Positions 2,786 through 32,726 of a DNA stretch of 32,726 bases are shown one piece after another (the stretch's first letter is position 1; each line of letters begins with the position of its first letter). The notes below the pieces were generated by a model. That model searched no databases. It was not told the origin of the DNA and saw only the letters and a program-made list of their open reading frames with translations. The stretch is from Macrostomum lignano (Eukaryota). A program made the position numbers and the translations under genes. Location of the stretch: assembly GCA_002269645.1 (NCBI GenBank), contig NIVC01003353.1, positions 1 to 32,726 of the forward strand, written 5' to 3'.

Positions 2786-2794
2786 GTGAGTAGC

Positions 2795-7381: not shown

Positions 7382-7424
7382 AAACGCGAGTTCTAATTCT
7401 ATTCCATCACTTGCCGTCTCCCAG

Positions 7425-8488: not shown

Positions 8489-8547
8489 GTAGCCCCTAAG
8501 TAACTAAGTAGTATATACAAATTAAATATCCGCTGTTGGCCCGGCAG

Positions 8548-9077
8548 GTCATCCCGCAGCAGGTTGGCCTCTACGGCGACAACGACAGTCCGCCGCTGGT
8601 GTTCTGCGGCTCTCCAGTCGGCTCGCCCAGGCGCACTGCGGAGTCCACCGCCGCCGCCAGCCAGCAGCAGCGGCAGTCTCGGCTGGACCGCCTCAGCCAG
8701 CTCGTGTCCGACGCTATCCGCGGCGTCAACGACCTGATCCTGGCTGCCACCGCCTCCCCGCTGGCTGCCGGCACGGCCGACGCCTCCAACCAGCAGCGGC
8801 TGTCCAGCGTGCTGTCGCAGAGCCTCTGCCCGCCGCTGCACGGCCTGCTGACCGACGAGCTGCTGTCTTCTGGCGGCAGCGGCGGCAGCGGCCCGGGCAG
8901 CCGGCTGTCCTTTGGTCGCAGCAGATCCCAGCTGTGGCAGCTGATTGAGGAGACTTGCAAGCCGAGCGGACAGCCCGCCAGCCGACGGCTCAACGAGGTG
9001 CTGCGGCAGGTCCGCTCGGTAGGCGGACTGTCTACGGAGCGGCTGAAGTTCAACGCCTTTGTAGCCGCCTGCCTCAA
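8548..9077 (+). CDS. RUSC2: RUSC-like gene exon 6: N-terminal part of the RUN domain
   Basis: CAG acceptor (8546-8547), phase-2 donor CAA|GTGAGC at 9078. LCPPLHGLLTDEL...LWQLIEET...LKFNAFVAACL matches the RUSC1/2 RUN pattern as recalled (LCP...DGL, W..VE, FNAFI..LLN). Symbol indicates family only; orthology untested. Confidence 0.9.
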
Positions 9078-9111
9078 GTGAGCTCTGGGGGAATTTGTTC
9101 TGTATTAGTGG

Positions 9112-9655
<544 letters not shown>

Positions 9656-9750
9656 CCTGCCTTCTTTCTGCTTCAGTTCCAAAGCAGTTAGATCTTCAGT
9701 AATAAGATTCCCAGCAGCTTGCTAAGCCACTCGCCCGCCCCGCCGTGCAG

Positions 9751-10338
9751 CTCCAAGCAGCTCAGCGCCTGGTTCCACCACGCCGCCAGCAGCGAGTCCA
9801 TTCTGAAGCGCTACTACAAACCGGGCGCCTTCCTGCGCAGCGCCCAGACCGTCCACTGCGAGCTGTTTGCCGATCTGTCCACCTCCCTCGAGCTGCTCAA
9901 CTCGCACTCTTTCGGCATCGAACTGGCCGTCTCGGCCTCCTCATCTGTGACCGCGGCCGGCCAGAACAATTCCCGCAGTAAGCCGGCCGGCCAGCAGCCA
10001 TTGAAGGCCCGGCACGACATCAAAACTCAGCAGCCGCCGCCGCCGCCGCCGCCGCCTCCGCAGCATCAGAGACCGGCGGCCCGGCCCCGCCGCCCCGGGT
10101 GCAGAGCCGGCTGCCCCGGCCTACCAGCTCGGCCGATTCCGCCACCGCCTCGTCAAGCGTCTCTATTGGCAGCTCGGTCTCGTCAACGGCCTCATCCACT
10201 GCTGCTGGCGTTAAAACCAAATCTGCCAGCTCTGGCGGCTCCGGCGGCGGCCTTCGGTCCACCCTGTCTGGCCTGATGAGGCGCCCGGGCTCGTCTTCGT
10301 CTAGCAAACAGCAGCAGCCCGGCACTGGGAAGCGCTGA
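9751..10338 (+). CDS. RUSC2: RUSC-like gene last coding exon: C-terminal RUN domain plus Pro/Ser-rich tail; apparent -1 frameshift near 10081
   Basis: GTGCAG acceptor (9749-9750). AA+C gives Asn and the join ACLN-SKQLSAWF...ILKRYYKPGAFLRSAQTVHCELFADL, parallel to recalled RUSC2 LLN-IRSLEFWF...[22 protein letters not shown]. Read as given it stops at 10276; the shifted frame ends ...GTGKR at 10338. Confidence 0.85.
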
Positions 10339-10408
10339 GTGAGGCTATTGCAGGCTCTGCTTTGTAGTTCACAGATGTTTTTGAATATGATGTGTTCGAA
10401 GTTTTCAA

Positions 10409-11417
10409 TTCAGAGTTGGGATATTTGCGCGCTTAGAGAGCAGCGCAGTTCAGAGTTGGGATATCTGCGCGCTTAGAGAGCAGCGCAGTTCAGAGTTGGG
10501 ATATCTGCGCGCTTAGAGACCAGCTCAATTCAGAGTTGGGATATCTGCGCGCTTAGAGACCAGCTCAATTCAGAGTTGGGATATCTGCGCGCTTAGAGAG
10601 CAGCTCAGTTCAGAGTTGGGATATCTGCGCGCTTAAAGAGCAGCTCAGTTCAAAGTTGGGATATCTGCGCGCTTAGAGAGCAGCTCAGTTCAGAGTTGGG
10701 ATATCTGCGCGCTTAGAGACCAGCTCAATTCAGAGTTGGGATATCTGCGCGCTTAGAGAGCAGCTCAGTTCAGAGTTGGGATATCTGCGCGCTTAGCTCG
10801 TAGAGAGCAGCTCAGTTCAGAGTTGGGATATCTGCGCGCTTAGAGAGCAGCTCAGTTCAGAGTTGGGATATCTGCGCGCTTAGAGAGCAGCTCAGTTCAG
10901 AGTTGGGATATCTGCGCGCTTAGAGAGCAGCTCAGTTCAGAGTTGGGATATCTGCGCGCTTAGAGAGCAGCGCAGTTCAGAGTTGGGATATCTGCGCGCT
11001 TAGAGAGCAGCGCAGTTCAGAGTTGGGATATCTGCGCGCTTAGAGACCAGCGCAGTTCAGAGTTGGGATATCTGCGCGCTTAGAGAGCAGCCCAGTTCAG
11101 AGTTGGGATATCTGCGCGCTTAGAGAGCAGCGCAGTTCAGAGTTGGGATATCTGCGCGCTTAGAGAGCAGCGCAGTTCAGAGTTGGGATATCTGCGCGCT
11201 TAGAGACGAGCGCAGTTCAGAGTTGGGATATCTGCGCGCTTAGAGACCAGCTCAATTCAGAGTTGGGATATCTGCGCGCTTAGAGAGCAGCGCAGTTCAG
11301 AGTTGGGATATCTGCGCGCTTAGAGAGCAGCTCAGTTCAGAGTTGGGATATCTGCGCGCTTAGAGAGCAGCTCAGTTCAGAGTTGGGATATCTGCGCGCT
11401 TAGAGACCAGCTCAGTT
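10409..11417. repeat. 40-bp minisatellite CAGAGTTGGGATATCTGCGCGCTTAGAGAGCAGC(G/T)CAGTT
   Basis: Period of 40 read directly (AGTTGGGATA at 10861 and 10901); about 25 highly similar copies. Confidence 0.97.
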
Positions 11418-12022: not shown

Positions 12023-12524
12023 GCGAAAGTTCCATGTGATTATATAATTAGTTTTGTTATAGTCTGTCAGCTGAAGTATATTGAATATTTATGTTTATAT
12101 CTTTACTATTTATTATACATAATCACTATAAATTTGCTTTGAATTCATTATGCTGTGTTTAAACTGTTATTAACACGTTGACTAAATGACTGCTTATTAA
12201 TAATGTTATTCTGTTACCACTGTTATTAATGAGGATCATTGATGATATTATAGTTCTCTGAATCGGGGACAGTTCACTGACTTGTGTACTATTGCGTAAT
12301 GTTTCAAGCAAAGAATTAATTAATTAATTAATATATTCACTGCCTTGCCACCTGCTCGACTTTGACCGACGAATTCAAGCAGATTTAAATTAAATTGAAT
12401 CTTGCTTTTTGTGTCGGCCTGTTGTGTTTTACTTTTACTGTCAAAAAGAAGAAAAGATTTGCAGTTTTGTAACTCCTTTATATGAAATAGCTCACAAAAT
12501 CATCCCGCCATGATGATGGGCTTT

Positions 12525-14061
12525 TCCCATCATAAGCTATTCCCATCATGAGCTATTCCCATCATAAGCTATTCCCATCATGAGCTATTCCCATCATGAG
12601 CTATTCCCATCATGAGCTATTCCCATCATAAGCTATTCCCATCATGAGCTATTCCCATCATAAGCTATTCCCATCATGAGCTATTCCCATCATGAGCTAT
12701 TCCCATCATGAGCTATTCCCATCATGAGCTATTCCCATCATGAGCTATTCCCATCATGAGCTATTCCCATCATAAGCTATTCCCATCATGAGCTATTCCC
12801 ATCATAAGCTATTCCCATCATGAGCTATTCCCATCATGAGCTGCTTCCATCATGAGCTATTCCCATCATGAGCTTTTCCCATCTTGAGCTCTTCCCATCA
12901 TGAGCTATTCCCATCATGAGCTATTCCCATCATGAGCTATTCCCATCATGAGCTATTCCCATCATGAGCTGCTTCTATCATGAGCTACGAGTATTCCCAT
13001 CATGAGCTATTCCCATCATGAGCTATTCCCATCATGAGCTATTCCCATCATGAGCTATTCCCATCCTGAGCTATTCCCATCCTGAGCTATTCCCATCATG
13101 AGCTATTCCCATCGTGAGCTGCTTCTATCATGAGCTATTCCCATCATGAGCTACGAGTATTCCCATCATGAGCTCTTCCCATCATGAGCTCTTCCCATCA
13201 TGAGCTATTCCCATCATGAAGTATTCCCATCATAAGCTATTCCCATCATGAACTATTCCCATCATGAGCTATTCCTATCATGAGCTGCTTCCATCACAAG
13301 CTATTCCTATCATGAGCTATTCCCATCCTGAGCTATTCCCATCATGAGCTATTCCCATCATGAGCTATTCCCATCATGAGCTGCTTCCATCACGAGCTAT
13401 TCCTATCATGAGATATTCCCATCATGAGCTATTCCCATCATGAGCTGCTTCCATCACGAGCTATTCCTATCATGAGCTATTCCCATCACAAGCTCTTCCC
13501 ATCATGAGCTATTCCCATCATGAACTATTCCCATCATGAGCTATTCCCATCATGAGCTATTCCCATCATGAGCTATTCCCATCATGAGCTATTCCCATCA
13601 TGAGCTATTCCCATCCTGAGCTATTCCCATCATGAGCTATTCCCATCGTGAGCTGCTTCTATCATGAGCTATTCCCATCATGAGCTACGAGTATTCCCAT
13701 CATGAGCTCTTCCCATCATGAGTTATTCCCATCATGAACTATTCCCATCACAAGCTATTCCTATCATGAGCTATTCCCATCCTGAGCTATTCCCATCATG
13801 AGCTATTCCCATCATGAGCTATTCCCATCATGAGCTGCTTCCATCACGAGCTATTCCTATCATGAGATATTCCCATCATGAGCTGCTTCCATCACGAGCT
13901 ATTCCTATCATGAGCTATTCCCATCATGAGCTATTCCCATCATGAGCTGCTTCCATCACGAGCTATTCCCATCATGAGCTATTCCCATCATGAGCTCTTC
14001 CCATCATGAGCTATTCCCATCATGAACTATTCCCATCATGAGCTCTTCCCATCATGAGCTC
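12525..14061. repeat. 16-bp minisatellite CTATTCCCATCATGAG
   Basis: Direct reading; about 95 copies with recurring variants (CTGCTTCC, CTACGAGTATT). Confidence 0.97.
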
Positions 14062-14865
14062 TTTCTATCTGACCGGTCAATGTGACCGGAACTGGAGGTC
14101 GCTTTGATCGCGAAAGAGTGGGTCTTGAAGTGTCTACGTGGACTCCTCATTTAGCCTGATAGAATTACAGGGATTTTCAACGCCATCGAAATCGAAGCTA
14201 AGAAGTTCTATCAATGCAAATTAATATATAGTAGAATAGCAAATTGCTAGTATCTAATTATACTACTTAATTCGAATTTTCAGTAGTACCATCATGATTC
14301 TGTTTCCAGTTTAAGTTCAACCATATGTTTCCTACAGAGTTGTCTTTCAATATTTGCAGAAGCCAGTCAGTCAGCTCTGTGTGAAACGCTCGTGTTTATA
14401 TTGCCCCATTTCTATGAAGTTGGATTGCCCGATAAAGTGCGCGCTATCCAATCCACTGCAAGCTGATACATGTCGGGCCGAGGCCACTGGCGCGTGCTCG
14501 CTAAACGTCGTGTCCCTCCTACAAAGGCAAACACTTGGGGGGGGGTCCGAATTTTCAATGTCCAACTGGAGGGTAACTTACAATAAGCATGCAGGTTCTG
14601 TTGCTGTGTGTGCAATACTTTGTAGGGAATTAATTTACTCAGCACTCGAATATGTTGGGCTGAATTTTTGACACAATGGATAGAAGGGACCGCCGCTGTG
14701 ATGCGGGGCTTAACAGCGATGCAATAATGCACAGAGACATCTGTCAGTCAGGAATAAGCAGTTGGCTAAGTTTATGTGAGCTTTTTACACACTCTTGCGA
14801 GTTTAATAGTTCTGGTTATTTTCCTGCGACAGTTTCACTTTGTGTTCTCTTACCACCGCCAATGT

Positions 14866-17800
14866 GTGTCTGTCTCCACTCTCTGTGTCTATCTCCACTC
14901 TCCGTGTTTATCCCCAGTTTCTATCTCCACCCTCCGTGTTTATCTCCAGTGTCTATCTCCACTCTCCGTGTTTATCCCCAGTTTCTATCTCCACCCTCCG
15001 TGTTTATCTCCAGTGTCTATCTCCACTCTCCGTGTTTATCCCCAGTTTCTATCTCCACCCTCCGTGTTTATCTCCAGTGTCTATCTCCACTCTCCGTGTT
15101 TATCCCCAGTTTCTATCTCCACCCTCCGTGTTTATCTCCAGTGTCTATCTCCACTCTGTGTCTATCTCCACCCTCCGTGTCTATCCCCAGTGTCCGTCTC
15201 CAGTGTCTGTCTCCACTCTCTGTGTCTATCTCCCCTCTCCGTGTTTATCCCCAGTGTCTATCTCCACCCTCCGTGTCTATCCCCGGTGTCTGTCTCCACT
15301 CTCTGTGTCTATCTCCACCCTCCGTGTTTATCCCCAGTGTCTGTCTCCACTCTCTGTGTCTATCTCCACTCTCCATGTTTATCCCCAGTGTCTATCTCCA
15401 CCCTCCGTGTTTATCTCCAGTGTCTGTCTCCACTCTCTGTGTCTATCTCCACTCTCCGTGTTTATCCCCAGTTTCTATCTCCACCCTCCGTGTCTATCCC
15501 CGGTGTCTGTCTCCACTCTCTGTGTCTATCTCCACCCTCCGTGTTTATCCCCAGTGTCTGTCTCCACTCTCTGTGTCTATCTCCACTCTCCATGTTTATC
15601 CCCAGTGTCTATCTCCACCCTCCGTGTTTATCCCCAGTGTCTGTCTCCAGTGTCTGTCTCCACTCTCTGTGTCTATCTCCACTCTCCGTGTTTATCCCCA
15701 GTGTCTATCTCCGCCCTCCGTGTTTATCTCCAGTGTCTGTCTCCACTCTCTGTGTCTATCTCCACTCTCCGTGTTTATCCCCAGTTTCTATCTCCACCCT
15801 CCGTGTCTATCCCCAGTGTCTGTCTCCAGTGTCTGTCTCCACTCTCTGTGTCTATCTCCACCCTCCGTGTTTATCCCCAGTGTCTGTCTCCACTCTCTGT
15901 GTCTATCTCCACTCTCCGTGTTTATCCCCAGTGTCTATCTCCACCCTCCGTGTTTATCTCCAGTGTCTGTCTCCACTCTCTGTGTCTATCTCCACTCTCC
16001 GTGTTTATCACCAGTGTCTGTCTCCAGTGTCTGTCTCCACTCTCTGTGTCTATCTCCACTCTCCGTGTCTATCCCCAGTGTCTGTCTCCAGTGTCTGTCT
16101 CCACTCTCTGTGTCTATCTCCACCCTCCGTGTTTATCCCCAGTGTCTGTCTCCAGTGTCTGTCTCCACTCTCTGTGACTATCTCCACTCTCCGTGTTTAT
16201 CCCCAGTGTCTATCTCCGCCCTCCGTGTTTATCTCCAGTGTCTGTCTCCACTCTCTGTGTCTATCTCCACTCTCCGTGTTTATCCCCAGTTTCTATCTCC
16301 ACCCTCCGTGTCTATCCCCAGTGTCTGTCTCCAGTGTCTGTCTCCACTCTCTGTGTCTATCTCCACCCTCCGTGTTTATCCCCAGTGTCTGTCTCCACTC
16401 TCTGTGTCTATCTCCACTCTCCGTGTTTATCCCCAGTGTCTATCTCCACCCTCCGTGTTTATCTCCAGTGTCTGTCTCCACTCTCTGTGTCTATCTCCAC
16501 TCTCCGTGTTTATCCCCAGTTTCTATCTCCACCCTCCGTGTCTATCCCCAGTGTCTGTCTCCAGTGTCTGTCTCCACTCTCTGTGTCTATCTCCACTCTC
16601 CGTGTTTATCCCCAGTGTCTATCTCCACCCTCCGTGTTTATCTCCAGTGTCTGTCTCCAGTGTCTGTCTCCACTCTCTGTATCTATCTCCACCCTCCGTG
16701 TTTATCTCCAGTGTCTGTCTCCACTCTCTGTGTCTATCTCCACTCTCCGTGTTTATCCCCAGTTTCTATCTCCACCCTCCGTGTCTATCCCCAGTGTCTG
16801 TCTCCAGTGTCTGTCTCCACTCTCTGTGTCTATCTCCACTCTCCGTGTTTATCACCAGTGTCTATCTCCACTCTGTGTCTATCTCCACCCTCCGTGTCTA
16901 TCCCCAGTGTCTGTCTCCAGTGTCTGTCTCCACTCTCTGTGTCTATCTCCACTCTCCGTGTCTATCCCCAGTGTCTGTCTCCAGTGTCTGTCTCCACTCT
17001 CTGTGTCTATCTCCACTCTCCGTGTTTATCCCCAGTTTCTATCTCCACCCTCCGTGTTTATCTCCAGTGTCTATCTCCACTCTCCGTGTTTATCCCCAGT
17101 TTCTATCTCCACCCTCCGTGTTTATCTCCAGTGTCTGTCTCCACTCTCTGTGTCTATCTCCACTCTCCGTGTTTATCCTCAGTTTCTATCTCCACCCTCC
17201 GTGTCTATCCCCAGTGTCTGTCTCCAGTGTCTGTCTCCACTCTCTGTGTCTATCTCCACTCTCCGTGTTTATCCCCAGTGTCTATCTCCACCCTCCGTGT
17301 TTATCTCCAGTGTCTGTCTCCACTCTCTGTGTCTATCTCCACTCTCCGTGTTTATCCCCAGTGTCTGTCTCCACTCTCCGTGTTTATCTCCAGTGTCTGT
17401 CTCCACTCTCTGTGTCTATCTCCACTCTCCGTGTTTATCTCCAGTGTCTGTCTCCACTCTCTGTTTCTATCTCCACTCTCCGTGTCTATCTCCAGTGTCT
17501 GTCTCCACTCTCTGTGTCTATCCCCAGTGTCTGTCTCCACTCTCCGTGTTTATCCCCAGTGTCTGTCTCCACCCTCCGTGTTTATCTCCAGTGTCTGTCT
17601 TCACCCTCCGTGTCTATCTCCAGTGTCTGTCTCCACTCTCTGTGTCTATCTCCACTCTCCGTGTTTATCCCCAGTGTCTGTCTCCACTCTCCGTGTTTAT
17701 CTCCAGTGTCTGTCTCCACCCTCCGTGTTTATCCCCAGTGTCTGTCTCCACTCTCCGTGTCTATCTCCAGTGTCTGTCTCCACTCTCTGTGTCTATCCCC

Positions 17801-18246
17801 AGTGTCTGTCTCCACTCTCCGTGTTTATCCCCAGTGTCTGTCTCCACCCTCCGTGTTTATCTCCAGTGTCTGTCTTCACCCTCCGTGTCTATCTCCAGTG
17901 TCTGTCTCCACTCTCTGTGTCTATCTCCACTCTCCGTGTTTATCCCCAGTGTCTGTCTCCACTCTCCGTGTTTATCTCCAGTGTCTGTCTCCACCCTCCG
18001 TGTTTATCCCCAGTGTCTGTCTCCACTCTCCGTGTTTATCTCCAGTGTCTGTCTCCACCCTCCGTGTTTATCCCCAGTGTCTGTCTCCACTCTCCGTGTC
18101 TATCTCCAGTGTCTATCTCCACCCTCCGTGTTTATCCCCAGTGTCTGTCTCCACTCTCCGTGTTTATCTCCACCCTCCGTGTCTATCTCCAGTGTCTATC
18201 TCCACCCTCCGTGTTTATCCCCAGTGTCTGTCTCCACTCTCCGTGT
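14866..18246. repeat. Composite minisatellite of 19-bp (CTCCACTCTCCGTGTTTAT) and 13-bp (CCCCAGTGTCTGT) modules
   Basis: Direct reading; about 3.4 kb. The modules contain no stop codons on +, which explains the 445-1205 aa ORFs. Confidence 0.97.
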
Positions 18247-18250
18247 ATAG

Positions 18251-18690
18251 AGGCAGGATAGAGACAGCAGCCTCCTCCATGTCAATCTCATAGTCAGGAA
18301 GGGCAGGATAGAGACAGCAGCCTCCTCCATGTCAATCTCATAGTCAGGAAGGGCAGGATAGAGACAGCAGCCTCCTCCATGTTAATCTCATAGTCAGGAA
18401 GGGCAGGATAGATACAGCAACCTCCTCCATGTCAATCTCATAGTCGGGAAGGGCAGGATAGAGACAGCAGCCTCCTCCATGTCAATCTCATAGTCAGGAA
18501 GGGCAGGATAGAGACATCAGCCTCCTCCATGTCAATCTCATAGTCAGGAAGGGCAGGATAGAGACATCAGCCTCCTCCATGTCAATCTCATAGTCAGGAA
18601 GGGCAGGATAGAGACAGCAGCCTCCTCCATGTCAATCTCATAGTCAGGAAGGGCATGATAGAGACAGCAGCCTCCTCCATGTCAATCTCA
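18251..18690. repeat. 50-bp tandem repeat GAAGGGCAGGATAGAGACAGCAGCCTCCTCCATGTCAATCTCATAGTCAG
   Basis: Period of 50 read directly; about 9 near-identical copies. Confidence 0.97.
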
Positions 18691-19184: not shown

Positions 19185-19858
19185 GCCAAAATGGACCCAA
19201 AGATGGCGCCAAAATGGACCTAAGGATGGCGCCAAAATGAACCCAAGGACGGCGCTAAAATAGACCCAAGGATAGCGCCAAAATGAAACTAAGGATGGCG
19301 CCAAAATCGACCCAAAGATGGCGCCAAAATCGATCCAAGGATGGCGCCAAAATAGACCTAAATATGGCACCAAAAGGAAACTAAGGATGGCGCCAAAATC
19401 GACCCAAGGATGGCGCCAAAATCGACCCAAGGATGGCGCCAAAATCGACCCAAGGATGGCGCCAAAATCGACCCAAGGATGGCGCCAAAATCGACCCAAG
19501 GATGGCGCCAAAATCGACCCAAGGATGGCGCCAAAATCGATCCAAGGATGGCGCCACAATGAATCTTAAACATAACGCTAAAATAGACCCAAGGATGGTG
19601 CTACAATGGGCCTCAGACCTTAATAGACCTTAAGTATAGCACCAAGATGGATCTCAAGTATAGCACCAAAATGGACCTTAAGTATAGCACCAAAATGGAC
19701 CTTAAGTATAGCATCAAAATGGATCTCAAGTATAGCGCCAAAATGGATCTTAAGTACCAGTACAGCGCCAAAATGGACCTTAAGTATAACGCCAAAATGG
19801 ACCTTAAGTATAACGCCAAAATGGACCTTAAGTACCGGTATAGCGCCAAAATAGGCCT
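19185..19858. repeat. Two related arrays: 23-mer AAGGATGGCGCCAAAATCGACCC followed by 24-mer ATGGACCTTAAGTATAGCACCAAA
   Basis: Direct reading; periods of 23 (~19185-19610) and 24 (~19624-19858). Confidence 0.95.
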
Positions 19859-21209
19859 TGATAGCATTACAAAACAGACTGCAGCAACAAAATAACTGGT
19901 ATCCAGAAAAAACGTTTAAACAGCCTAAAAAATAAGAGAGTTCGATAAAGTTCGGCAGCACGCAGCGATACAGCTGCACACACACACACAGATGTCTTAT
20001 GTTGCACACGCATGGCTAGCAACCGGGTCAGCGTCATCATGCAAAGCAAATTAGTTGCCACATCGCATATAAAAGGGAATTACTGTATCCTATCAATAGC
20101 TACCGTGCCTATTGGATGGGTGTCTAAATAAATTACCCCACGCGACAGGCCTCGCTGCTCTGTTTAAGAGACAGACGCATGAAAAAAGGGAAGGCGAGAG
20201 AGGCCTAATTGCTTTCCGCCCAAAGAAGTCCTCAAGGCGGCTCCGGGATCGGCGAGATGAAATGTAGCAGCGGAGTTCCGCCGCCGCCCCTCAGTTCCTC
20301 CAATGTCCCTCGGGGGGGGGGGGGGGGCTGCTCTGTAAAGCCGAACGGGAACGGCTAGATGAAAATACGAGGAAGGAATTCGGCTAGGAGGCTGCGTGAT
20401 GGCGGCTTGCCTTAGCCTTCGGTTTCGGGCCAAAGTAGACCGAACAGCCCGCGATAATGAATATGCCGGGCCGGCCTTAGTATAGGATATCCAGGGGAAC
20501 TTCTGACAGAAACTTTTCCATCTTCCTGCGCGCCTTCGCAGGATCCGACAAGAGACGGGGGTTCGAGATGAATGGGGAGAGGGAGAGTGAGGTGAAAAAT
20601 TCCCCTCCCTAGTGCTCCTTACCAGATTCTCTACCCAGCTCCCCTCTCCCTCTCCTGTCACACTTGCCCGGACTGCAGCTCTCACACCGCCCGCACCAGG
20701 GGTTGGGGTTGCGGCTAATCCCATTCACATCGGCGCGCATATCTTTGGTGAAATCCTAGCGTGCACAGGGCTTGGGCGGGGCAGGCAGGCAGTCAGGCAT
20801 ACCAAACTGCGGCTGCTGCCCCCTTCCCTGTACTTCAGACGGTTGAGGGGGGCTTGCAATGTCGATCTGGGCTTTGGTTCCCTCCTCTCTCGCTATTTCC
20901 ACCCTCGTCTCCGCTCTCTCCTCTCTCTACCCCTCTCTGGTCTTCCGACTGGCCAGCCCCCCCCGCCCCAGTGACACGAGGAAGAAGGAGGGCTGGCGGG
21001 CCAGGACTAAAGGCGGGAGGCCCAGAGTTTATCGGTTGGATAGAAAGGCAAAAAGGCTTGAAGCGGAAAAGGTGGCCGTTAGTTTTGCCTGAAGGCCTTG
21101 CTTGGTTCTAGCGTAGCTTGTATCGGATTTTCAGCCGGGGCCGAAGCAGCGAATCTCGGTTAGGACAGATCGTTTTTATCATTCTTCAAGCCTCAGTCAC
21201 AGCCGCAAC

Positions 21210-22370
21210 ATGAGTGGCAAGAAAGTGGTGCAAATTCCGCCCGGCTTCAAAGACCTGCTGCAGGACTTCACTGTGGCTGTGCTCAAGGAGACGCCTGAGG
21301 ATGTCGTGGAATTCGCCATCGAGTATTTCACCAGGCTGCGCATGGAAAAAATCTCGCAGAGTCAGGAGGGGGCCGAGGCCGCCGCCGAAGCTGCCGAAGC
21401 CGACTCAGACATCGACGACGAGCCTATGCAGGCGCCGCCGCCGCGTCGCGGACCTCGCCGAGTTGCCGTCGCCGGCGAGAGCTTCGACCCGGAGAAAGAG
21501 GACGACGACGACACTCCGGTAGTGAACCACCCCAAGACCGAGGAGCAGCGGCAGCGCCTGAACGAGGCCGTCAAGCACATCCTGCTGTTCCGCTGCCTGG
21601 ACGAGGACCAGATGCGTGACGTCATCAACGCCATGTTCGAGCGGCGCTGCCAGCCGGGCGAGAAGGTCATCACGCAGGGCGAGGACGGCGACAATTTCTA
21701 CGTGATCGAGTCGGGAGTCTACGACATCTACGTCCTGATCAACGGCCAGGACACCAAGGTCGGCCAGTACGATAACAAAGGCTCCTTTGGCGAGCTCGCC
21801 CTGATGTACAACGCTCCGCGGGCTGCCACCATCCAATGCGCCTCCTCCGGCAGCATCTGGGCGATGGACCGCGACACTTTCCGACGTCTGGTGCTGAAGA
21901 AGGCCTTCCAGAAGCGAGTGATGTACGAGAACCTCATCGACTCCGTGCCGCTGCTCAAGGAGCTGGCGCCCTACGAACGGATGAACATCGCCGATGCGTT
22001 GAAGTCCCGCGTGTACGAAGACGGCGACTGCATCATCGTCCAGGGCGACGTTGGCAACGAGATGTACTTTATCGAGGATGGCGAGGTGCGAATCACGCGG
22101 AAAACCCAGGACGGCAGCGGTGAGATGGAGCTGTCCAGACTGCAGAAGGGCGGCTACTTCGGCGAGCTGGCCCTGCTGACCAAGCAGCCCCGAGCCGCCA
22201 ATGTCTACGCCTGCGGCGGCAAGTGCAAAGTAGCCGTGCTGGACGTCGGCTCGTTCGAGCGGTTGCTCGGCCCCTGCCTGGACATCATGCGCCGCTCCAT
22301 CGACAACTACCAGCAGCAGCTCACCAGTCTGTTCGGCAGCATGGAGGCCGTGCCCGACCTGCGCGCCTGA
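21210..22370 (+). CDS. PRKAR2: cAMP-dependent protein kinase type II regulatory subunit, 386 aa, single coding exon
   Basis: RII-type docking/dimerisation domain ([35 protein letters not shown]) and linker [11 protein letters not shown]. Two cNMP-binding domains with intact phosphate-binding cassettes [17 protein letters not shown] and [18 protein letters not shown]-terminal [21 protein letters not shown] start context. Confidence 0.98.
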
Positions 22371-22456: not shown

Positions 22457-23900
22457 CCTTCCTGTCTCTCCCAACCCCTTCCTGTCTCCCAACCCCTTCC
22501 TGTCTCTCTCAAATCCTTCCCGTCTCTCTCAAATCCTTCCTGTCTCTCCAACCCCTTCCTGTCTCTCCCAATCCCTTCCTGTCTCTCCCAACCCATTCTT
22601 GTCTCTCTCAGATCATTCCCGTCTCTCCCAACCCCTTCCTGTCTCTCCCAATCCCTTCCTGTCTCTCTCAATCCCTTCCTGTCTCTCCCAAATCCTTCCC
22701 GTCTCTCTCAAATCCTTCCTGTCTCCCTCAACCCCTTCCTGTCTCTCCTAACCCCTTCCTGTCTCTCCCAAATCCTTCCCGTCTCTCCCAAATCCTTCCT
22801 GTCTCTCCCAACCCCTTCCTGTCTCTCTCAATCCCTTCCTGTCTCTCCCAAATCCTTCCTGTCTCCCTCAACCCCTTCCTGTCTCTCCTAACCCCTTCCT
22901 GTCTCCCTCAACCCCTTCCTGTCTCCCTCAACCCCTTCCTGTCTCTCTCAATCCCTTCCTGTCTCTCCCAACCCCTTCCTGTCTCTCCCAATCCCTTCCT
23001 GTCTCTCCCAAATCCTTCCCGTCTCTCTCAAATCCTTCCTGTCTCCCTCAAACCCTTCCTGTCTCTCCCAAATCCTTCCTGTCTCCCTCAATCCCTTCCT
23101 GTCTCTCTCAAATCCTTCCTGTCTCCCTCAATCCCTTCCTGTCTCTCCCAAATCCTTCCTGTCTCCCTCAACCCCTTCCTGTCTCTCCTAACCCCTTCCT
23201 GTCTCTCCTAACCCCTTCCTGTCTCTCTCAATCCCTTCCTGTCTCTTCCAAATCCTTCCTGTCTCCCTCAACCCCTTCCTGTCTCTCCAAACCCCTTCCT
23301 GTCTCTCCAAACCCCTTTCTGTCTCTCCAAACCCCTTCCTGTCTCTCCAAACCCCTTCCTGTCTCTCCCAACCCCTTCCTGTCTCTCTCACCCCTTCCTG
23401 TCTCTCCCAACCCCTTCCTGTCTCTCTCACCCCTTCCTGTCTCTCCCAACCCCTTCCTGTCTCTCCCAACCCCTTCCTGTCTTCCTCAACCCTTTCCTGT
23501 CTTCCTCAACCCCTTCCTGTCTCTCCCAACCCCTTCCTGTCTCTCTCACCCCTTCCTGTCTCTCCCAACCCCTTCCTGTCTCTCTCACCCCTTCCTGTCT
23601 CTCCCAACCCCTTCCTGTCTCTCCCAACCCCTTCCTGTCTCTCCCAACCCCTTCCTGTCTCTCTCACCCCTTACTGTCTCTCCCAACCCCTTCCTGTCTC
23701 TCTCACCCCTTCCTGTCTCCCCCAACCCCTTCCTGTCTCTCTCACCCCTTCCTGTCTCTCCCAACCCCTTCCTGTCTCTCCCAACCCCTTCCTGTCTCTC
23801 TCACCCCTTTCTGTCTCTCCCAATTCCTTCCCGTCTCTCTCAAATCCTTCATGTCTCCCTCAACCCCTTCCTGTCTCCCTCAACCCCTTCCTGTCTCTCT
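22457..23900. repeat. ~20-bp minisatellite AACCCCTTCCTGTCTCTCCC
   Basis: Direct reading; about 70 copies, starting ~90 nt after the PRKAR2 stop codon. Confidence 0.97.
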
Positions 23901-24057: not shown

Positions 24058-24540
24058 CAATCTCATTCGTTTATCAATTTTTCGTGTGCCCCGCGTAATT
24101 TTGTTTGTTATTTTCAGTCGAATCCATCTAATCTTCTTAAAACTAAAGTTACAAACAATGTCATAGTATGGAGTTCGACATGTTTTTTATTTAGGCCTCG
24201 CTTAATAAAAATGTCTGTTTGAATTGCTGCAATTGTTTTAACAATATTTTCTCAAGCTGTCTTAAGTTGAGTAGATATTCGAATTTCGGCGTAGCTGACC
24301 AGAGACCGCACATGCCGCACAGAACCCACATGCACTGCCGCCGAATTTTGCACGGCCTTCCCCATCCAACAGCTTCAGCAGCTCTTGCCCCGGCACTCTT
24401 GTTAGCTGGCGCTTTGAAATGTGCGTACAGAAAGCCGAAACTTTAGAAATTTAAATTCTAACAATACAAAGAAGCATTCAAACAAAAATTCCACTTTTGT
24501 TTTGAAGTATTTTTTGTCTGATTTAAAAAAACGACCGCTA

Positions 24541-25826
24541 CTCTCTCCTCTTCTCTGTTTTTTCTCTTTCTCTGCCCTCTTCTCCCTCTTCTTTCTCTTC
24601 TCTCTCTTCCCACTCTTTGCCCTCTTCTCTCTCTTCCCACTCTTTGCCCTCTTCTCCCTCTTCTCCCTCTTCTCCCTCTTCTTTCTCTTCTCTCTCTTCT
24701 CTCTCTTCCCACTCTTTGCCCTCTTCTCTCTCTTCCCACTCTTCTCCCTCTTCTCCCTCTTCTCTCTCCTCCCTCTTCTCTCTCTTCTCCCGCTTCTCCC
24801 TCTTTTCCTCTTCGCCCTCTTCTCTCTCTTCGCCCTATTCTCTCTCTTCTCCCTCTTCTCTCTCTTCTCCCTCTTCTCCTTCTTCCCCCTCTTCTGTCTC
24901 TTCCCCCTCTTCCCCCTCTTTGCCCTCTTCCCCCTCTTTGCCCTCTCCTCCCTCTTCTCTCTCTTCTCCCTCTTCTCTCTCTTCTCCCTCTTCCCCCTCT
25001 TTGCCCTCTCCTCCCTCTTCTCTCTCTTCTCCCTCTTCTATTTCTTCTCCCTCTTCCCCCTCTTCTCCCTCTTCTCCCTTTTCTCCCTCTTCTCCCTCTT
25101 CTCCCTCTTTGCCCTCTCCTCCCTCTTCTCTCTCTTCTCCCTCTTCTATTTCTTCTCCCTCTTCCCCCTCTTCTCCCTCTTCTCCCTCTTCTCCCTCTTC
25201 TCCTTCTTCCCCCTCTTCCCCCTCTTCCCCCTCTTCTGTCTCTTCCCCCTCTTCCCCCTCTTTGCCCTCTTCCCCCTCTTTGCCCTCTTCTCCCTCTTCT
25301 CTCTCTTCTCCCTCTTCCCCCTCTTTGCCCTCTCCTCCCTCTTCTCTCTCTTCTCCCTCTTCTCTCTCTTCTCCCTCTTCCCCCTCTTTGCCCTCTCCTC
25401 CCTCTTCTCCCTCTTCTATTTCTTCTCCCTCTTCCCCTCTTCTCCCTCTTCTCCCTTTTCTCCCTCTTCTCCCTCTTCCCCCTCTTTGCCCTCTCCTCCC
25501 TCTTCTCTCTCTTCTCCCTCTTCTATTTCTTCTCCCTCTTCCCCCTCTTCTCCCTCTTCCCCTCTTCTCCCTCTTCTCCCTCTTCTCCCTCTTCTCCCTC
25601 TTCTCTCTCTTCCCCTCTTCCCCCTCTTCCCCCTCTTCCCCCTCTTCTCCCTCTTCTCCCTATAGCCCCTTCCCCTCTTCTCTCTTCCTCCTCTTCCTTC
25701 TCTTCTCTTGCTTCTCCATCTTCTCCCTCTTGCCCCTCTCCTTTCCCTCCTTTCCCTCTTTGTCCTTTTTGTCCTCTTTGCCCTCTCTTCCCCCTCTTCT
25801 ACCTCTTTTCAGTCTTCCCTTCCTTC
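24541..25826. repeat. Polypyrimidine repeat built mainly on 9-bp CTCTTCTCC modules
   Basis: Direct reading. Confidence 0.95.
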
Positions 25827-26448
25827 ATCTGGTTTTTAACTTTTCCTTCGCCAAGGAAACGAGTTGTCCCAAGCCAAGTCATGCTCTGCCAGTCACCGTG
25901 ACAGAGCGGTCCTCATACCTTGCTTCCTCTCCTAGCCCAGTTCCCTGTTGGCGGCATGGGGCACGGGGAGGAGAGGGGGGAGGTCGCTGAATTCCGCTCA
26001 TTTCCCGGACCCTTAACCATAAATTAAGGACCCAACCCGTGGACAAGAATCCCACAGATCTACCCCAACACTTTCACCCCTCCCTCCTCATAGGTGGGGC
26101 TTTCATCGATTTCTCCGTATCGAGGTCATGCAGTTAACTGGTGAAAACGCACCGATTATGCACAGAGCTTGGGGGATTTTGTTTCACTTTAGTTATAAAT
26201 ATATTCTGTGCACTGTAGCTGTCTAGCTGTTCGCTTTTGCTGCGTTGCTAAAGAATTCTTTGCGGCGTTATCTACATAAGCAGCGCAATTTAGAGCGGAC
26301 AAACTGTACACTTTTTGGGTTGCGCAGGATTCGCTGCCTATCTTAGCGCTATCTTGCTGAATTCGTCCTGCAATTAATGGCCTTTCTTCATCTAGTACAT
26401 CCAGTCTCCCGCAGTCTTGTCTTCTGTCTATTTTGTCTTCACTTTTCT

Positions 26449-27345
26449 GTCTCTCCCTTCCTCTCTCTCCCTTTCTCTCTCTCCTTTCCTCTTTCCCTTC
26501 CTCTCTCTCCCTTTCTCTCTCTCCCTTCCTCTCTCCCTTTCTCTCTCTCTCCCTTCCTCTCTCTCCCTTTCTCTCTCTCCCTTCCTCTCTCTCCCTTCCT
26601 CTCTCCCTTTCTCTCTCTCCCTTCCTCTCTCTCCCTTCCTCTCTCTCCCTTCTCTCTCCCTTCCTCTCTCTCCCTTTCTCTCTCTCCCTTCCTCTCTCCC
26701 TTTCTCTCTTTCCTTTCCTCTCTCCCTTCCTCTCTCTCCCTTCCTCTCTCCCTTCCTCTCTCTCTCTCTCCCTTTCTCTCTCTCCCTTCCTCTCTCTCCC
26801 TTCCTCTCTCTCCCTTCCTCTCTCTCCCTTCCTCTCTCTCCATTCCTCTCTCTCTCCCTTTCTCTCTCTCCCTTCCTCTCTCTCTCCCTTTCTCTCTCTC
26901 CCTTCCTCTCTCTCCCTTCCTCTCTCTCCCTTCCTCTCTCTCCCTTCCTCTCTCTCCCTTCCTCTCTCTCCCTTTCTCTCTCTCCCTTCCTCTCTCTCTC
27001 CCTTTCTCTCTCCCTTCCTCTCTCTCCTTCCTCTCTCTCCCTTTCTCTCTCTCCCTTCCTCTCTCTCTCCCTTTCTCTCTCCCTTCCTCTCTCTCCCTTC
27101 CTCTCTCTCCCTTCCTCTCTCTCTTTCTCTCTCTCCCTTCCTATCTCTCTTTCTCTCTCTCCCTTCCTCTCTCTCTCCCTTTCTCTCTCTCCTTTCCTCT
27201 CTCCCTTCCTCTCTCCCTTCCTCTCTCTCCCTTCCTCTCTCTCCCTTCCTCTCTCTCCCTTCCTCTCTCTCCCTTCCTCTCTCTCCCTTCCTCTCTCTCC
27301 CTTCTCTCTCTCCCTTCCTCTCTCTCCCTTCCTCTCTCTCCCTTC

Positions 27346-27377
<32 letters not shown>

Positions 27378-27932
27378 CTTCCTCTCTCTCCCTTCCTCTC
27401 TCTCTCCTCTCTCTCTCTTTCCTCTCTCTCCTTCTCTCTCCTTCCTCTCTCTCCCTTCCTCTCTCTCCCTTCCTCTCTCCCTTCCTCTCTCCCTTCCTCT
27501 CTCCCTTCCTCTCTCCCTTCCTCTCTCTCCTTCCTCTCTCTCCCTTCCTCTCTCTCCCTTCCTCTCTCTCCCTTCCTCTCTCTCCCTTCCTCTCTCTCCC
27601 TTCCTCTCTCCCTTCCTCTCTCTCCCTTCCTCTCTCTCCCTTCTCTCTCTCCCTTTTCTCTCTCTCCTTTCCTCTCTCCCTTCCTCTCTCTCCCTTCCTC
27701 TCTCCCTTCCTCTCTTTCCGTTCCTCTCTCTCCCTTTCTCTCTCTCCCTTCCTCTCTCCCTTTCTCTCTTTCCTTTCCTCTCTCCCTTCCTCTCTCTCCC
27801 TTCCTCTCTCCCTTCCTCTCTCTCCCTTCCTCTCTCTCCCTTCCTCTCTCTCCCTTTCTCTCTCTCTCCCTTCCTCTATCCCTTCCTCTCTCTCCCTTCC
27901 TCTCTCTAACTTCCTCTCTCTCTCTTCCTCTC
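26449..27932. repeat. Nearly pure C/T repeat of 12/14-bp CTTCCTCTCT(CT)CC units
   Basis: Direct reading; only a handful of purines in ~1.5 kb. Confidence 0.97.
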
Positions 27933-28243
27933 ATGCTTTCCTTTTCCACCTTTTGGTCCTTCACCGAAGCAGACGCAGCTCCTTTTAATTTCTCGAATCG
28001 CCTCTATCAATCTTCTAGCTTTGGCAAACAATGCTGGCACCCAATTGCCTGCAGTTGACACTTCGGTGTCTGAAATTGATCGGTTGAATTAAACTGCGAA
28101 AACTGTGCCACTGCTGTGGAGACCTGCTAGTTGTCCACGGGCTGATTATACTCACCCTAATTTATCATAGCTCATCGTTTTTCTCCCAAATAATAATTTC
28201 CCGCTCTCATCATTTCTGTCAATGGAAGAAAATTAAAGGATGG

Positions 28244-29912
28244 AAGTGGACACTCAGGTGAGAAGTGGACACTCAGGTGAATAGTGGACACTCAGGAGAG
28301 AAGTGGACACTCAGGTGAGGAGTGGATACTCAGGTGAGAAGTGGACACTCAGGTGAATAGTGGACACTCAGGTGAGAAGTGGACACTCAGGTGTGGAGTG
28401 GACACTCAGGTGAATAGTGGACACTCAGGAGAGAAGTGGACACTCAGGTGTGGAGTGGACACTCAAGTGAGAAGTGGACACTCAGGAGAGAAGTGGACAC
28501 TCAGGTGAGAAGTGGACACTCAGGTGAGAAGTGGACACTCAGGTGAGAAGTGGACATTCAGGTGAGGAGTGGACACTCAGGCGAGGAGTGGACACTCAGG
28601 TGAGGAGTGGACACTCAGGTGAGGAGTGGACACTCAGGTGAGAAGTGGACACTCAGGTGTGGAGTGGACACTCAGGTGAGAAGTGGACACTCAGGTGTGG
28701 AGTGGATACTCAGGTGAGGAGTGGACACTCAGGTGAGGAGTGGACACTCGGTGAGGAGTGGACACTCAGGTGAGAAGTGGACACTCAGGTGAGGAGTGGA
28801 CACTCAGGTGAGAGTGGACACTCAGGTGAGAAGTGGACACTCAGGTGAGGAGTGGACACTCAGGTGAGAAGTGGACACTCAGGTGAGAAGTGGACACTCA
28901 GGTGTGGAGTGGACACTCAGGTGAGAAGTGGACACTCAGGTGAGGAGTGGACACTCAGGTGAGGAGTGGACACTCAGGTGAGAAGTGGACACTCAGGTTA
29001 GGAGTGGACACTCAGGTGAGGAGTGGACACTCAGGTGAGGAGTGGACACTCAGGTGAGGAGTGGACACTCAGGTTAGGAGTGGACACTCAGGTGAGAAGT
29101 GGACACTCAGGAGAGAAGTGGACACTCAGGTGAGGAGTGGACACTCAGGTGAGAAGTGGACACTCAGGTGTTGAGTGGACACTCAGGTGAGGAGTGGACA
29201 CTCAGGTGAGAAGTGGACACTCAGGTGAGGAGTGGACACTCAGGTGAGGAGTGGATATTCAGGTGAGGAGTGGACACTCAGGTGAGGAGTGGACACTCAG
29301 GTTAGGAGTGGACACTCAGGTGAGAAGTGGACACTCAGGAGAGAAGTGGACACTCAGGTGAGGAGTGGACACTCAGGTTAGGAGTGGACACTTAGGTGAG
29401 GAGTGGACACTCAGGTGAGGAGTGGATACTCAGGAGAGAAGTGGACACTCAGGTGAATAGTGGACACTCAGGTGAGAAGTGGACACTCAGGTGAGGAGTG
29501 GACACTCAGGTGAGAAGTGGACACTCAGGTGAATAGTGGACACTCAGGAGAGAAGTGGACCTCAGGTGAGGAGTGGACACTCAGGTGAGGAGTGGACACT
29601 CAGGTGAGGAGTGGACACTCAGGTGAGGAGTGGACACTCAGGTGAGAAGTGGACACTCAGGTGAGGAGTGGACACTCGGTGAGGAGTGGACACTCAGGTG
29701 AGGAGTGGACACTCGGGTGAGGAGTGGACACTCAGGTGAGGAGTGGATATTCAGGTGAGGAGTGGACACTCGGGTGAGGAGTGGACACTCAGGAGAGAAG
29801 TGGACACTCAGGTGAGAAGTGGACACTCAGGTGAGGAGTGGACACTCGGGTGAGGAGTGGACACTCAGGTGAGGAGTGGACACTCAGGTGAGAAGTGAAC
29901 ACTAAGGTGAGA
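28244..29912. repeat. 20-bp minisatellite AGTGGACACTCAGGTGAG(G/A)A
   Basis: Direct reading; about 80 copies. Confidence 0.97.
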
Positions 29913-30339
29913 AATGAGGAGGTGAGGAGTTCAAAATTTTATTTCATTCTTTGTTCCCTCCCCAACGGGTGGGGCTCTGATTGCTAGTCTATAACTAAGT
30001 TTATTTACTGACATCATTCCAGTCCAATTAGTAAGTGTAGGATAAAAAATGTAATGACAGATACATTACAAAGTTCTTAAAACTGAGAGCAGCTTAAAAT
30101 GTCGAGAAACAAATAGAGATTGCAATAGCAAAGATCAGCTGACCATTAAAATACATCACATCATTCAATCACACCATTAAAATACGTGGAGAACTATCAT
30201 ACTGCATACATATACTACTGCACATGCGACAATATGGATTGTTAAAGTAGTAAGTAAGAAACATATCGAGAATTTTGTCCTTGTACTTTAACCTAATTTG
30301 CATAAACAGCAAAAACGGTAGTCCTGTCTCAACCGACCC

Positions 30340-30815
30340 CTGCCTGTCTCTCCGGCCCCTTCCTGTCTCTCCAGCCCCTTCCTGTCTCTCCAACCCCTCC
30401 CTGTCTCTCCAAACCCCTTCCTGTCTCTCCAAACCCCTTCCTGTCTCTCCAAACCCCTTCCTGTCTCTCCAAACCCCTTCCTGTCTCTCTAAACCCCTTC
30501 CTGTATCTCCAAACCCCTTACTGTCTCTCTCAACCCTTCCTGTATCTCCAACCCCCTTCCTGTCTCTCCAAACCCCTTCCTGTCTCTCCAAACCCCTTCC
30601 TGTCTCTCTAAACCCCTCCCTGTCTCTCCAAACCCCTTCCTGTATCTCCAAACCCCTTCCTGTCTCTCCAAACCCCTTCCTGTCTCTCCAAACCCCTTCC
30701 TGTCTCTCCAAACCCCTTCCTGTCTCTCCAAACCCCTTCCTGTCTCTCCAAACCCCTTCCTGTCTCTCTCACCCCTTCCTGTCTCTGTCAACCTCTTCCT
30801 GCCTGTCTCGTCTCT
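30340..30815 (+). repeat. 20-bp minisatellite AAACCCCTTCCTGTCTCTCC (same family as 22457-23900)
   Basis: Direct reading. Confidence 0.95.
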
Positions 30816-31151
30816 TTCCTTTCTTTCACATACCCCTTCTTCTCTGAGAAGCTGGGTCATTGCCCCCGAAGCTGAACCGCCACCAAATTTAAAAGCAAGA
30901 TCTCAAAGAAGCACAATTGCAAGTTAAATTTGTTCAGCTCTCAGAATTAATCTTGTCAATTTTGAGTTCACGAATCAGTAAATTCATTCTCAATGTTAAC
31001 TGACTTTCTTCGCCTCCTTCCCAGAATTCGCGTTCGACTCTCATACCACAGTGAGATCTGTACACAGCAATAGGACAAGGCCAGGACCACCTGCAGATGC
31101 CACCAAGGTCCTGCGAAAGTGTATTTGTTTTGCTTACTTTTCATCTTCTTT

Positions 31152-31778
31152 GAGAGAGACAGGAATGGCTTGAGAGAAAGACAGGAAGGGGTTTGGAGAG
31201 ACAGGAAGGGTTGAGAGACAGGAAGGGGTGAGAGACAGGAAGGGGTGAGAGACAGGAAGGGGTGAGAGACAGGAAAGGGGTGAGAGACAGGAAGGGGTGA
31301 GAGACAGGAAGGGTGAGAGACAGGAAGGGGTGAGAGACTGGAAAGGTGAGATAGACAGAAGGATGAAGGACAGGAAGGTTAGAGAGACAGGAAGGGGTGA
31401 GAGAGACGAGAAAGGGTGAGAGACAGGAAGGGGTGAGAGAGACAGGAAGGGGTTGGGAGAGACAAGAAGGAGTGAGAGAGACAGGAAGGGGTTGGGAGAG
31501 ACAGGAAGGGGTGAGAGAGACAGGAAGGGTTGGGAGAGACAGGAAGGGTGAGAGAGACAGGAAGGGGTTGGGAGACAGGAAGGGTGAGAGAGACAGGAAG
31601 GGGTGAGAGAGACAGGAAGGGGTTGGAGAGACAGGAAGGGGTGAGAGAGACAGGAAGGGGTTGGGAGAGACAGGAAGGGGTGAGAGAGACAGGAAGGGGT
31701 TGGGAGAGACAGGAAGGGGTGAGAGAGACAGGAAGGGTGAGAGAGACAGGAAGGGGTTGGGAGAGACGGGAAGGGTTG
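31152..31778 (-). repeat. Same CCCCTTCCTGTCTCTC family in inverted orientation (GAGAGACAGGAAGGGG on +)
   Basis: Direct reading; reverse complement of the 30340-30815 core. Confidence 0.95.
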
Positions 31779-32121
31779 ACAGTGATATTAATGAATAAAA
31801 AGGCCAAATTACTATCGTGCGACATTCTTACTGTATAGAAAAAGAGGTTTAAAAATCTCCACCATGAGATGAACAGCCGGGTGCTTGCCGGTCAGGAAGA
31901 CAAATATAAAGCAGGAAGTCAGGACCAAATTGCCAGGCCAATGACGTAAGCAACCAACCGCTTGGTGATTGTTGGGGCTGAGATCAAATTCTGAAATATT
32001 TGTGGGCAGGATTGTTGCGGGAAAAGTTTTCAGACTGAATGACATCATAAACGGGGTGTTGTGTTAACTACTCTTTCCTTCAAACTCTGTTCTCGGACAC
32101 ACAAGAAGGTCAAAGTGAGTT

Positions 32122-32726
32122 CGAGATCACCTGGATCAGTCACTCGGAGCTCACTCTGGTCAGTCACTCGGAGATCACTCTGGTCAGTCACTCGGAGCTC
32201 ACTCTGGTCAGTCACTCGGAGGTCACTCCTGGGTCAGTCACTCAGAGCTCACTCTGGTCAGTCACTCGAGCTCACTCTGGTCAGTCACTCGCGAGCTCAC
32301 TCTGGTCAGTCACTCGAGCTCATCTAGATCAGTCACTCGGAGCTCACTCTGGGTCAGTCACCGGAGCTCACTCTGGGGTCAGTCACTTAGAGCTCACTCT
32401 AGATCAGTCACTCGAGCTCACTCTGGGTCAGTCACCCGAGCTCACTCTGGGTCAGTCACTCGGAGCTCACTCTGGATCAGTCACTCGGAGCTCACTCTGG
32501 TTCAGTCACTCGAGCTCACTCTGGGTCAGTCACTCGGGATCACTCTGGGTCAGTCACTCGGAGCTCACTCTGGGTCAGTCACTCGAGATCACTCTGGGTC
32601 AGTCACCGCTCACTCTGGGTCAGTCACTCGGAGCTCACTCTGGGTCAGTCACTCGGAGCTCACTCTAGATCAGTCACTTCGGAGCTCACTCTGGTCAGTC
32701 ACCCGGAGCTCACTCTGGGTCAGTCA
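32122..32726. repeat. ~24-25-bp minisatellite GGTCAGTCACTCGGAGCTCACTCT, truncated by the window end
   Basis: Direct reading; many single-base indels between units. Confidence 0.95.

Follow-up and report, generated by a model that had tools for sequence, protein, structure and literature searches.

Can a regulatory (R) subunit of cyclic AMP (cAMP)-dependent protein kinase (PKA) be type II by descent and carry the inhibitor site of type I? The question is raised by a gene of the flatworm Macrostomum lignano on contig NIVC01003353.1 of assembly GCA_002269645.1; the stretch analyzed, referred to as the window (32,726 nucleotides), is this entire contig, as identified by exact protein look-up. A substrate versus a pseudosubstrate inhibitor site is treated as a fundamental difference between RII and RI subunits, the RI site being RRXA/G (PMC4497662). 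A 2025 survey of 1122 PKA R-subunit sequences, Platyhelminthes included, describes RRx[G/A] in RI and RRxS in RII as 'entirely conserved' in metazoans (PMC12608923). The window gene departs from this rule. It is highly probable that its product is a functional PKA regulatory subunit of the RII lineage and a member of an intron-free flatworm group, called g1 here, in which the serine of the inhibitor site is replaced by alanine or glycine as in RI.

The open reading frame (ORF) on the plus strand is uninterrupted from the ATG at 21210 to the stop codon at 22368-22370 and encodes 386 amino acids (Table 1). The protein has the parts of a PKA regulatory subunit. A dimerization/docking (D/D) domain is followed by an inhibitor sequence, which contains two arginines and has a hydrophobic residue at P+1, and by two cyclic-nucleotide-binding domains, each with an intact phosphate-binding cassette. 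In frame with the ATG, CGC CGA GTT GCC GTC reads R83 R84 V85 A86 V87, and the GCC codon of Ala86 (21465-21467) stands at the position of the autophosphorylated serine in canonical RII (the P-site). An initial annotation of this DNA had given the coordinates, the residue number and the single base separating GCC from TCC correctly. The R[RK]x[ST] motif, which is the PKA consensus phospho-acceptor, was found nowhere in the whole window protein, and an alternative phospho-acceptor elsewhere in the protein is thus ruled out. The linker in front of the inhibitor site (residues 48-82) is variable in an alignment of the best 120 relatives out of 5.8 billion database proteins, on which the counts below are also based.

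Overall similarity places the protein with RII. Pfam detects a RIIa domain (E 3.9e-13, residues 12-46) and two cNMP_binding domains (E 1.9e-39). In a comparison with all solved structures, RIIalpha scores highest (403 bits, residues 7 to 378 aligned), followed by RIIbeta (375 bits); RIalpha reaches 240 bits, and when only the fragments lacking the D/D domain are compared, the scores are 345 bits for RII versus 216 for RI. Residues 7-47 of the D/D domain are identical to RIIalpha residues 4-44 at 23 of 41 positions, including the N-terminal xQIPPG strand, and are free of cysteine. This xQIPxG strand, which in RII carries the isoleucines that bind A-kinase anchoring proteins (AKAPs), aligns with RIIalpha IQIPAGLTELLQGYTVEVL and identifies the D/D domain as RII type. 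A neighbor-joining tree (278 columns, 200 bootstraps) was rooted with the regulatory half of amphioxus cGMP-dependent protein kinase (PKG) and took in four RI sequences, from a mammal, an insect, a crustacean, and a sponge. Canonical RI was beyond the reach of an exhaustive representative search, whose results were largely multidomain and protist proteins, and the RI outgroups were therefore taken from a PDB alignment and from the supplementary FASTA of a paper; P0183, chosen as a possible RI, was ambiguous (270 versus 255 bits). The RII clade, with every flatworm sequence included, has 75.5% bootstrap support in this tree and the RI clade 100%, and the window protein, which is 39-41% identical to bovine, insect, and sponge RI, falls outside the latter.

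The bit scores and the PKG-rooted tree rule out a disguised RI. The initial annotation had claimed an RII-type protein, and the D/D domain, the two cAMP-binding domains, the overall similarity, and the placement in the RII clade all uphold this; a grouping with RI, which it had named as the result that would count against the claim, was checked by alignment and tree, and the protein falls in the RII clade instead. It had further spoken of a natural RI/RII hybrid. An RII lineage with an RI-type RRxA inhibitor site is indeed what is found, but the label is too strong because the protein is RI-like in one residue only. RRVA conforms to the RI motif RRx(A/G), but neither the sequence nor the clade is that of RI, and the autophosphorylatable RRxS of classical RII is lacking at Ala86. 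The protein is therefore best called an RII-lineage subunit bearing an RI-type inhibitor site, a canonical member of neither class, and the inhibitor motif alone does not suffice for an RI/RII assignment.

The alanine recurs in M. lignano. Contigs NIVC01002729.1 and NIVC01002730.1 encode the identical protein as well, and the three coding sequences differ by 1, 6, and 7 nucleotides, all of them third-position and synonymous, with the same GCC in each. The flanks of the three copies are 81-99% identical upstream and diverge downstream within repeat arrays; they represent either haplotypes left uncollapsed or recent duplications, the M. lignano genome being partly duplicated. RRVAV is also present in the M. 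lignano paralogs Mlig008623 (83% identical) and Mlig010423 (73%) and in a relative from environmental contigs that is 69% identical. The alanine codons of these three are GCC, GCG, and GCT, respectively, and hence the amino acid is kept although the third base varies. Nei-Gojobori ratios of nonsynonymous to synonymous substitution rates (dN/dS) are 0.28 and 0.19 against the paralogs P0002 and P0003 and 0.10 against the relative P0005. Judged by sequence comparison, none of the docking, inhibitor, and cAMP-binding elements is missing, and purifying selection acts on all of them. No poly(A) signal was found within 1.6 kb 3' of the window stop codon, and contigs L006 and L007 end without poly(A).

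Beyond Macrostomum, the P-site is alanine in 11 and glycine in 20 of the 31 flatworm-type ortholog clusters, whereas it is serine in all 87 clusters of other animal RII, which represent molluscs, annelids, arthropods, echinoderms, amphioxus, cnidarians, and others. Two further entries without serine are long multidomain proteins. The named members of g1 comprise Macrostomum, the trematodes Opisthorchis, Fasciolopsis, Calicophoron, Paragonimus, and several Schistosoma, the monogeneans Protopolystoma and Cichlidogyrus, and the cestodes Taenia, Mesocestoides, and Spirometra; no planarian, polyclad, or catenulid is among these named members. Four sequences from Logan, JGI, and ENA (P0008, P0010, P0013, and P0041) take a position in the tree between Macrostomum and the parasitic flatworms. 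The group shares the motif RRx(A/G)VA(A/G)ES(F/Y/W)DPEK, and the window protein belongs to it by motif, single exon, and clade. Neither the two arginines nor the P+1 valine varies across the 31 clusters, and together with the restriction to alanine and glycine this argues for a maintained pseudosubstrate, not for decay. Bootstrap support for the g1 clade is 67% in one neighbor-joining tree and 80.5% in the PKG-rooted one, with 98% for the Macrostomum sub-clade, and the branching inside g1 matches flatworm phylogeny. By branch lengths and by its 63% identity to annelid RII, g1 is the flatworm group least diverged from canonical RII.

The initial annotation had regarded the single base between GCC and TCC as an oddity of this protein. 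The base count is right, but the alanine is not isolated; it belongs to a state that is fixed throughout an intron-free RII lineage found across flatworms. Documentation of Ala-site RII proteins as common in invertebrates, which would have removed the novelty, was found in no paper; in the databases, the Ala/Gly state is universal among the flatworm orthologs and, one jellyfish protein apart, was found in no other invertebrate phylum. Outside flatworms, an RII-like protein of the jellyfish Sanderia malayensis (P0184, EukProt) has a D/D domain and reads RRQAVAAESYDP, with alanine at the P-site. It forms a long branch adjoining non-flatworm RII in the tree, and its alanine could be an independent loss of serine or a transcriptome contaminant.

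Parasitic flatworms also have other RII paralogs, and the Ser-type ones were found in trematodes and one monogenean. The g2 group, seen in Schistosoma, Heterobilharzia, Clonorchis, and others, reads RRHSVAAESFNP and includes a D/D domain, and the g3 group (Schistosoma mansoni, Calicophoron, Paragonimus, Fasciolopsis, and Cichlidogyrus) is without a D/D domain and reads RRQSVAAESFDPEK. A small Gly-site group, g4, is found in Heterobilharzia and Protopolystoma. The Ser-type proteins g2 and g3 resemble the window protein in their RII lineage, in the VAAES that follows the inhibitor site, and in 55-62% identity, but they have kept the serine and their genes are multi-exon.

Gene structure separates g1 from the Ser-type paralogs. 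The window gene and its paralog Mlig008623 each consist of one exon, as do the g1 genes of Schistosoma rodhaini (1137 nt), Taenia asiatica (1104), Opisthorchis viverrini (1143), and Cichlidogyrus casuarinus (1119), and each of these parasite genes translates straight into the database protein. The S. haematobium g2 gene, on the other hand, spans 33 kb with at least 9 coding pieces, a Heterobilharzia g3 gene model spans 138 kb, and the RII gene of the annelid Capitella spans 17.9 kb. On a single alignment, introns common to g2 and Capitella lie at the window-equivalent residues 72/73, 132, 167, ~300, ~320, and 341, and g1 genes lack every one of them. The sole intron within the g1 clade is that of Mlig010423 on NIVC01000075.1 (positions 2658-3910 of the extracted stretch L005). 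It has 1253 nt with GT..AG ends, of which ~960 are a (GTTA)n microsatellite of ~240 copies, and it interrupts the gene at residue 190, just before the first phosphate-binding cassette. This position is not an ancestral one and carries no intron in any other RII gene; the intron looks like a late lineage-specific insertion.

The group g1 is thus probably an ancient retrogene. A processed copy of an RII mRNA would have been fixed in an early flatworm, before Macrostomorpha split from the other rhabditophorans. This copy would then have lost the phospho-acceptor serine and become the best-conserved RII of the phylum, with intron-bearing Ser-type copies surviving at least in parasitic flatworms.

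Several points weigh against the reading of g1 as a whole. All trees are neighbor-joining trees, and a single flatworm RII radiation has 25% support in the one that gives g1 67%, so that no one order of duplication and serine loss is well supported. Ser-type RII was sought in Macrostomum with a Clonorchis query and then with an 11-sequence profile of the Ser-type groups; among the best 120 hits, no Macrostomum protein scored above the generic RII level against the g2/g3 profile, and the RII-type proteins found in M. lignano all carry RRVAV. The exon boundaries are approximate, as they come from tblastn and public gene models, and the status of this particular locus as a functional gene is deduced from its sequence. 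In addition, a 2009 schistosome paper states that no R subunit had been characterized at that time.

The rival explanations differ in how much of the finding they would undo. An intronless gene set in tandem-repeat DNA, with a GCC codon one base from TCC, invites the suspicion of a sequencing or assembly error behind the alanine, or of a decaying retro-pseudogene, either of which would be uninformative on function. The same codon on three contigs with synonymous differences only, the full-length intact ORF with both phosphate-binding cassettes kept, the dN/dS of 0.10-0.28 against the paralogs, and alanine or glycine in independent assemblies of more than 10 flatworm species speak against this, and error and pseudogene can be regarded as effectively refuted, the three contigs, the synonymous-only differences, and the dN/dS being sufficient to rule them out. 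A different objection accepts the protein and concerns only its origin, namely that the intron-free state arose in place, by stepwise intron loss or by cDNA gene conversion, with the Ser-type groups as side branches. Gene and intron turnover is well known for flatworm genomes, and no Ser-type parent gene was detected in M. lignano among the best 120 hits. Moreover, the branching order of the flatworm groups is poorly supported (25%), and for this reason conversion of the original locus by cDNA has to be entertained. Stepwise loss is countered by the fact that at least five ancestral intron positions are all gone at once in five early-diverged lineages, and this simultaneous absence is the signature of a processed copy. 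In-place cDNA conversion would look identical, so that this rival differs from the retrogene only in the landing site of the copy; an origin in place is considered unlikely overall, but with a real minority share of the probability.

The remaining rivals concern function. The loss of a conserved regulatory residue can mark a changed function, and g1 might no longer regulate the catalytic subunit but serve as a cAMP buffer or anchoring scaffold, its serine having been lost by relaxed constraint. Relaxed constraint, however, would permit many residues, while the 31 clusters show alanine or glycine only, as in RI. The invariant arginine pair and the hydrophobic residue at P+1 have no role other than docking in the kinase cleft, and g1 is the least diverged flatworm group from canonical RII. 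A buffer or scaffold role is thus very improbable. It may also be asked whether g1 took over the role of RI as a pseudosubstrate in an ATP-stabilized holoenzyme, with RI reduced or lost in flatworms. The RI-like inhibitor residue fits such a replacement, as do the numbers of the 2025 survey, which has one type I versus eight type II sequences across six platyhelminth species (PMC12608923). Conversely, at least one flatworm RI exists in the same survey, and the D/D domain of g1 is RII-type and cysteine-free, from which it follows that anchoring would differ from that of RI. Replacement of RI is rated as rather doubtful, although it is compatible with, and would supply a reason for, the preferred explanation, in which g1 is a working RII-lineage subunit with a pseudosubstrate site.

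For such a subunit, the mammalian mutants suggest how the holoenzyme would behave. The dimer would dock via the RII-type D/D domain, and RRVAV would fill the catalytic cleft as a true pseudosubstrate, as can be expected from mammalian serine-to-alanine mutants. Binding of cAMP at the two intact domains would then free the catalytic subunit. Its recapture would be fast and phosphatase-independent because the inhibitor site cannot take a phosphate, and the phospho-RII state would never be entered. At a given cAMP level, PKA activity would thereby be damped and shortened, with lower basal and stimulated activity. RIIbeta S112A, called a 'pseudosubstrate version' by its authors, shows barely changed catalytic-subunit binding kinetics, while the association of phospho-RIIbeta is slowed almost 60-fold, so that type II holoenzymes come to depend on phosphatases as essential partners (PMC4497662). 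RIIalpha S98A acts as a permanently dephosphorylated RII on which calcineurin has no effect, and it lowers reporter phosphorylation from ~21 to ~6.5% per minute at 1 uM cAMP (PMC8560092). By analogy with these mutants, g1 should show normal inhibition, no autophosphorylation, and phosphatase-independent reassembly; a MgATP-dependent high-affinity holoenzyme, typical of RI, whereas classical RII holoenzymes assemble without MgATP, may be possible. A bolder proposal, offered tentatively and with the balance tipped slightly against it, is that g1 represents a third class of animal R subunit, a retrogene RII with docking of type II and inhibition of type I (possibly ATP-stabilized); it would perhaps be the only RII of Macrostomum, where the phospho-RII/phosphatase cycle would then be absent.

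Full-text literature searches found no description of an alanine or glycine P-site in flatworm RII. The input file of the 2025 survey (PKAregulatory_input.fasta, PMC12608923) contains Schistosoma japonicum CAX82842.1, which reads RRAGVAAESYDPEK (RRAGV), and also Echinococcus granulosus CDS17353.1 with RRDSV; both flatworm site types are thus present in the input and pass unremarked there. The exception, its phylum-wide extent, and its link with the intron-free gene appear to be undescribed; the sequences themselves are public and annotated as type II by homology. The main RII ortholog of a phylum that breaks the RRxS rule amounts to a natural experiment on the purpose of the autophosphorylation cycle and offers a dated case of a retrogene gaining a new regulatory mode. 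The PKA catalytic subunit is essential in schistosomes (PMC2724707). Distinct holoenzyme properties could matter for anti-parasite work, and if the holoenzyme is truly lineage-specific, it would offer a target for attacking parasites selectively. M. lignano, a tractable and harmless laboratory flatworm, lends itself to tests of the question.

Table 1. Features of the window (contig NIVC01003353.1) and the evidence by which they were delimited
Feature	Position	Strand	Basis
PKA regulatory subunit coding sequence, RII lineage, single exon	21210..22370	+	ORF list, Pfam, RIIalpha alignment
D/D domain, RII type (VQIPPGF...EYFTRLR), aa 7-47, cysteine-free	21228..21350	+	Pfam RIIa, RIIalpha alignment
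Acidic Ala/Glu-rich linker, aa 48-82, ends PPPRRGP	21351..21455	+	direct reading
Inhibitor sequence RRVAV, P-3 to P+1	21456..21470	+	aligned to RIIalpha RRVSV, RIIbeta RRASV
Cyclic-nucleotide-binding domain A, ~aa 108-232	21531..21905	+	Pfam cNMP_binding, PDB fragment alignments
Domain A phosphate-binding cassette, FGELAL...PRAAT, aa 191-207	21780-21830	+	motif positions
Cyclic-nucleotide-binding domain B, ~aa 233-369	21906..22316	+	Pfam cNMP_binding best stretch aa 267-353, PDB alignments
Domain B phosphate-binding cassette, FGELAL...PRAAN, aa 315-331	22152-22202	+	motif positions
Minisatellite arrays	1592-4507, 5536-6105, 7021-7382, 9112-9653, 10405-11417		
Minisatellite arrays, continued	12516-14060, 14865-18690, 19185-19859, 22457-23899, 24575-25807		
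Minisatellite arrays, continued	26450-27932, 28245-29911, 30336-30801, 31150-31779, 32121-32726		

About two thirds of the contig consists of tandem minisatellite arrays with units of 4-50 nt, in which the R-subunit gene is an island of unique sequence; a 20-nt array of 72 copies begins 87 nt past its stop codon. A unit of ~20 nt (CCTTCCTGTCTCTCC...) is common to this array (22457-23899) and to those at 30336-30801 and 31150-31779. The third is in reverse complement, which implies a large inverted arrangement of one satellite family at the contig end. The ORFs at 14676-18293 (+), 24421-25665 (+), and 26189-27964 (-), which reach up to 1205 aa, lie wholly within tandem arrays and are low-complexity repeats; they were rejected as periodic-sequence artifacts. 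The ORF at 9719-10276 (+) contains a partial RUN domain (Pfam PF02759, E 1.6e-6, profile positions 77-127 of 131) and is probably one exon of a neighboring gene in the GC-richer stretch 6000-11000. Pfam gave no match in four other ORFs tested in 6000-11000 and upstream of the R-subunit gene, and nothing turned up when the window was scanned for Rfam families and tRNAs.

Among known systems, RIIalpha and RIIbeta (PRKAR2A and PRKAR2B) share with the window protein the D/D domain, a linker with an RRxxV inhibitor sequence, two cAMP-binding domains, and the clade, and they are 55% and 53% identical to it, respectively, over the inhibitor site plus the cAMP-binding region. They differ in having an autophosphorylated serine (S98/S99 and S112/S114) where the window protein has alanine, and the window gene is intronless and its linker shorter. 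RIalpha and RIbeta, on the other hand, share the pseudosubstrate inhibitor site RRx(A/G) but are ~40% identical, score 240 bits, and form a separate clade with 100% support. The cysteines of the RI D/D domain form inter-chain disulfides; they are absent from the window D/D domain, which instead has the RII N-terminal strand, and the P+1 residue is valine as in RII, in contrast to the isoleucine of RIalpha. The closest parallels are RIIbeta S112A and RIIalpha S98A, which likewise place alanine at the P-site of an RII scaffold and are the best available predictors of behavior. Even so, they are artificial single mutants of mammalian proteins, whereas the flatworm proteins had hundreds of millions of years for interface adjustment, of which the flatworm-specific VA(A/G)ES following the inhibitor site may be an example.

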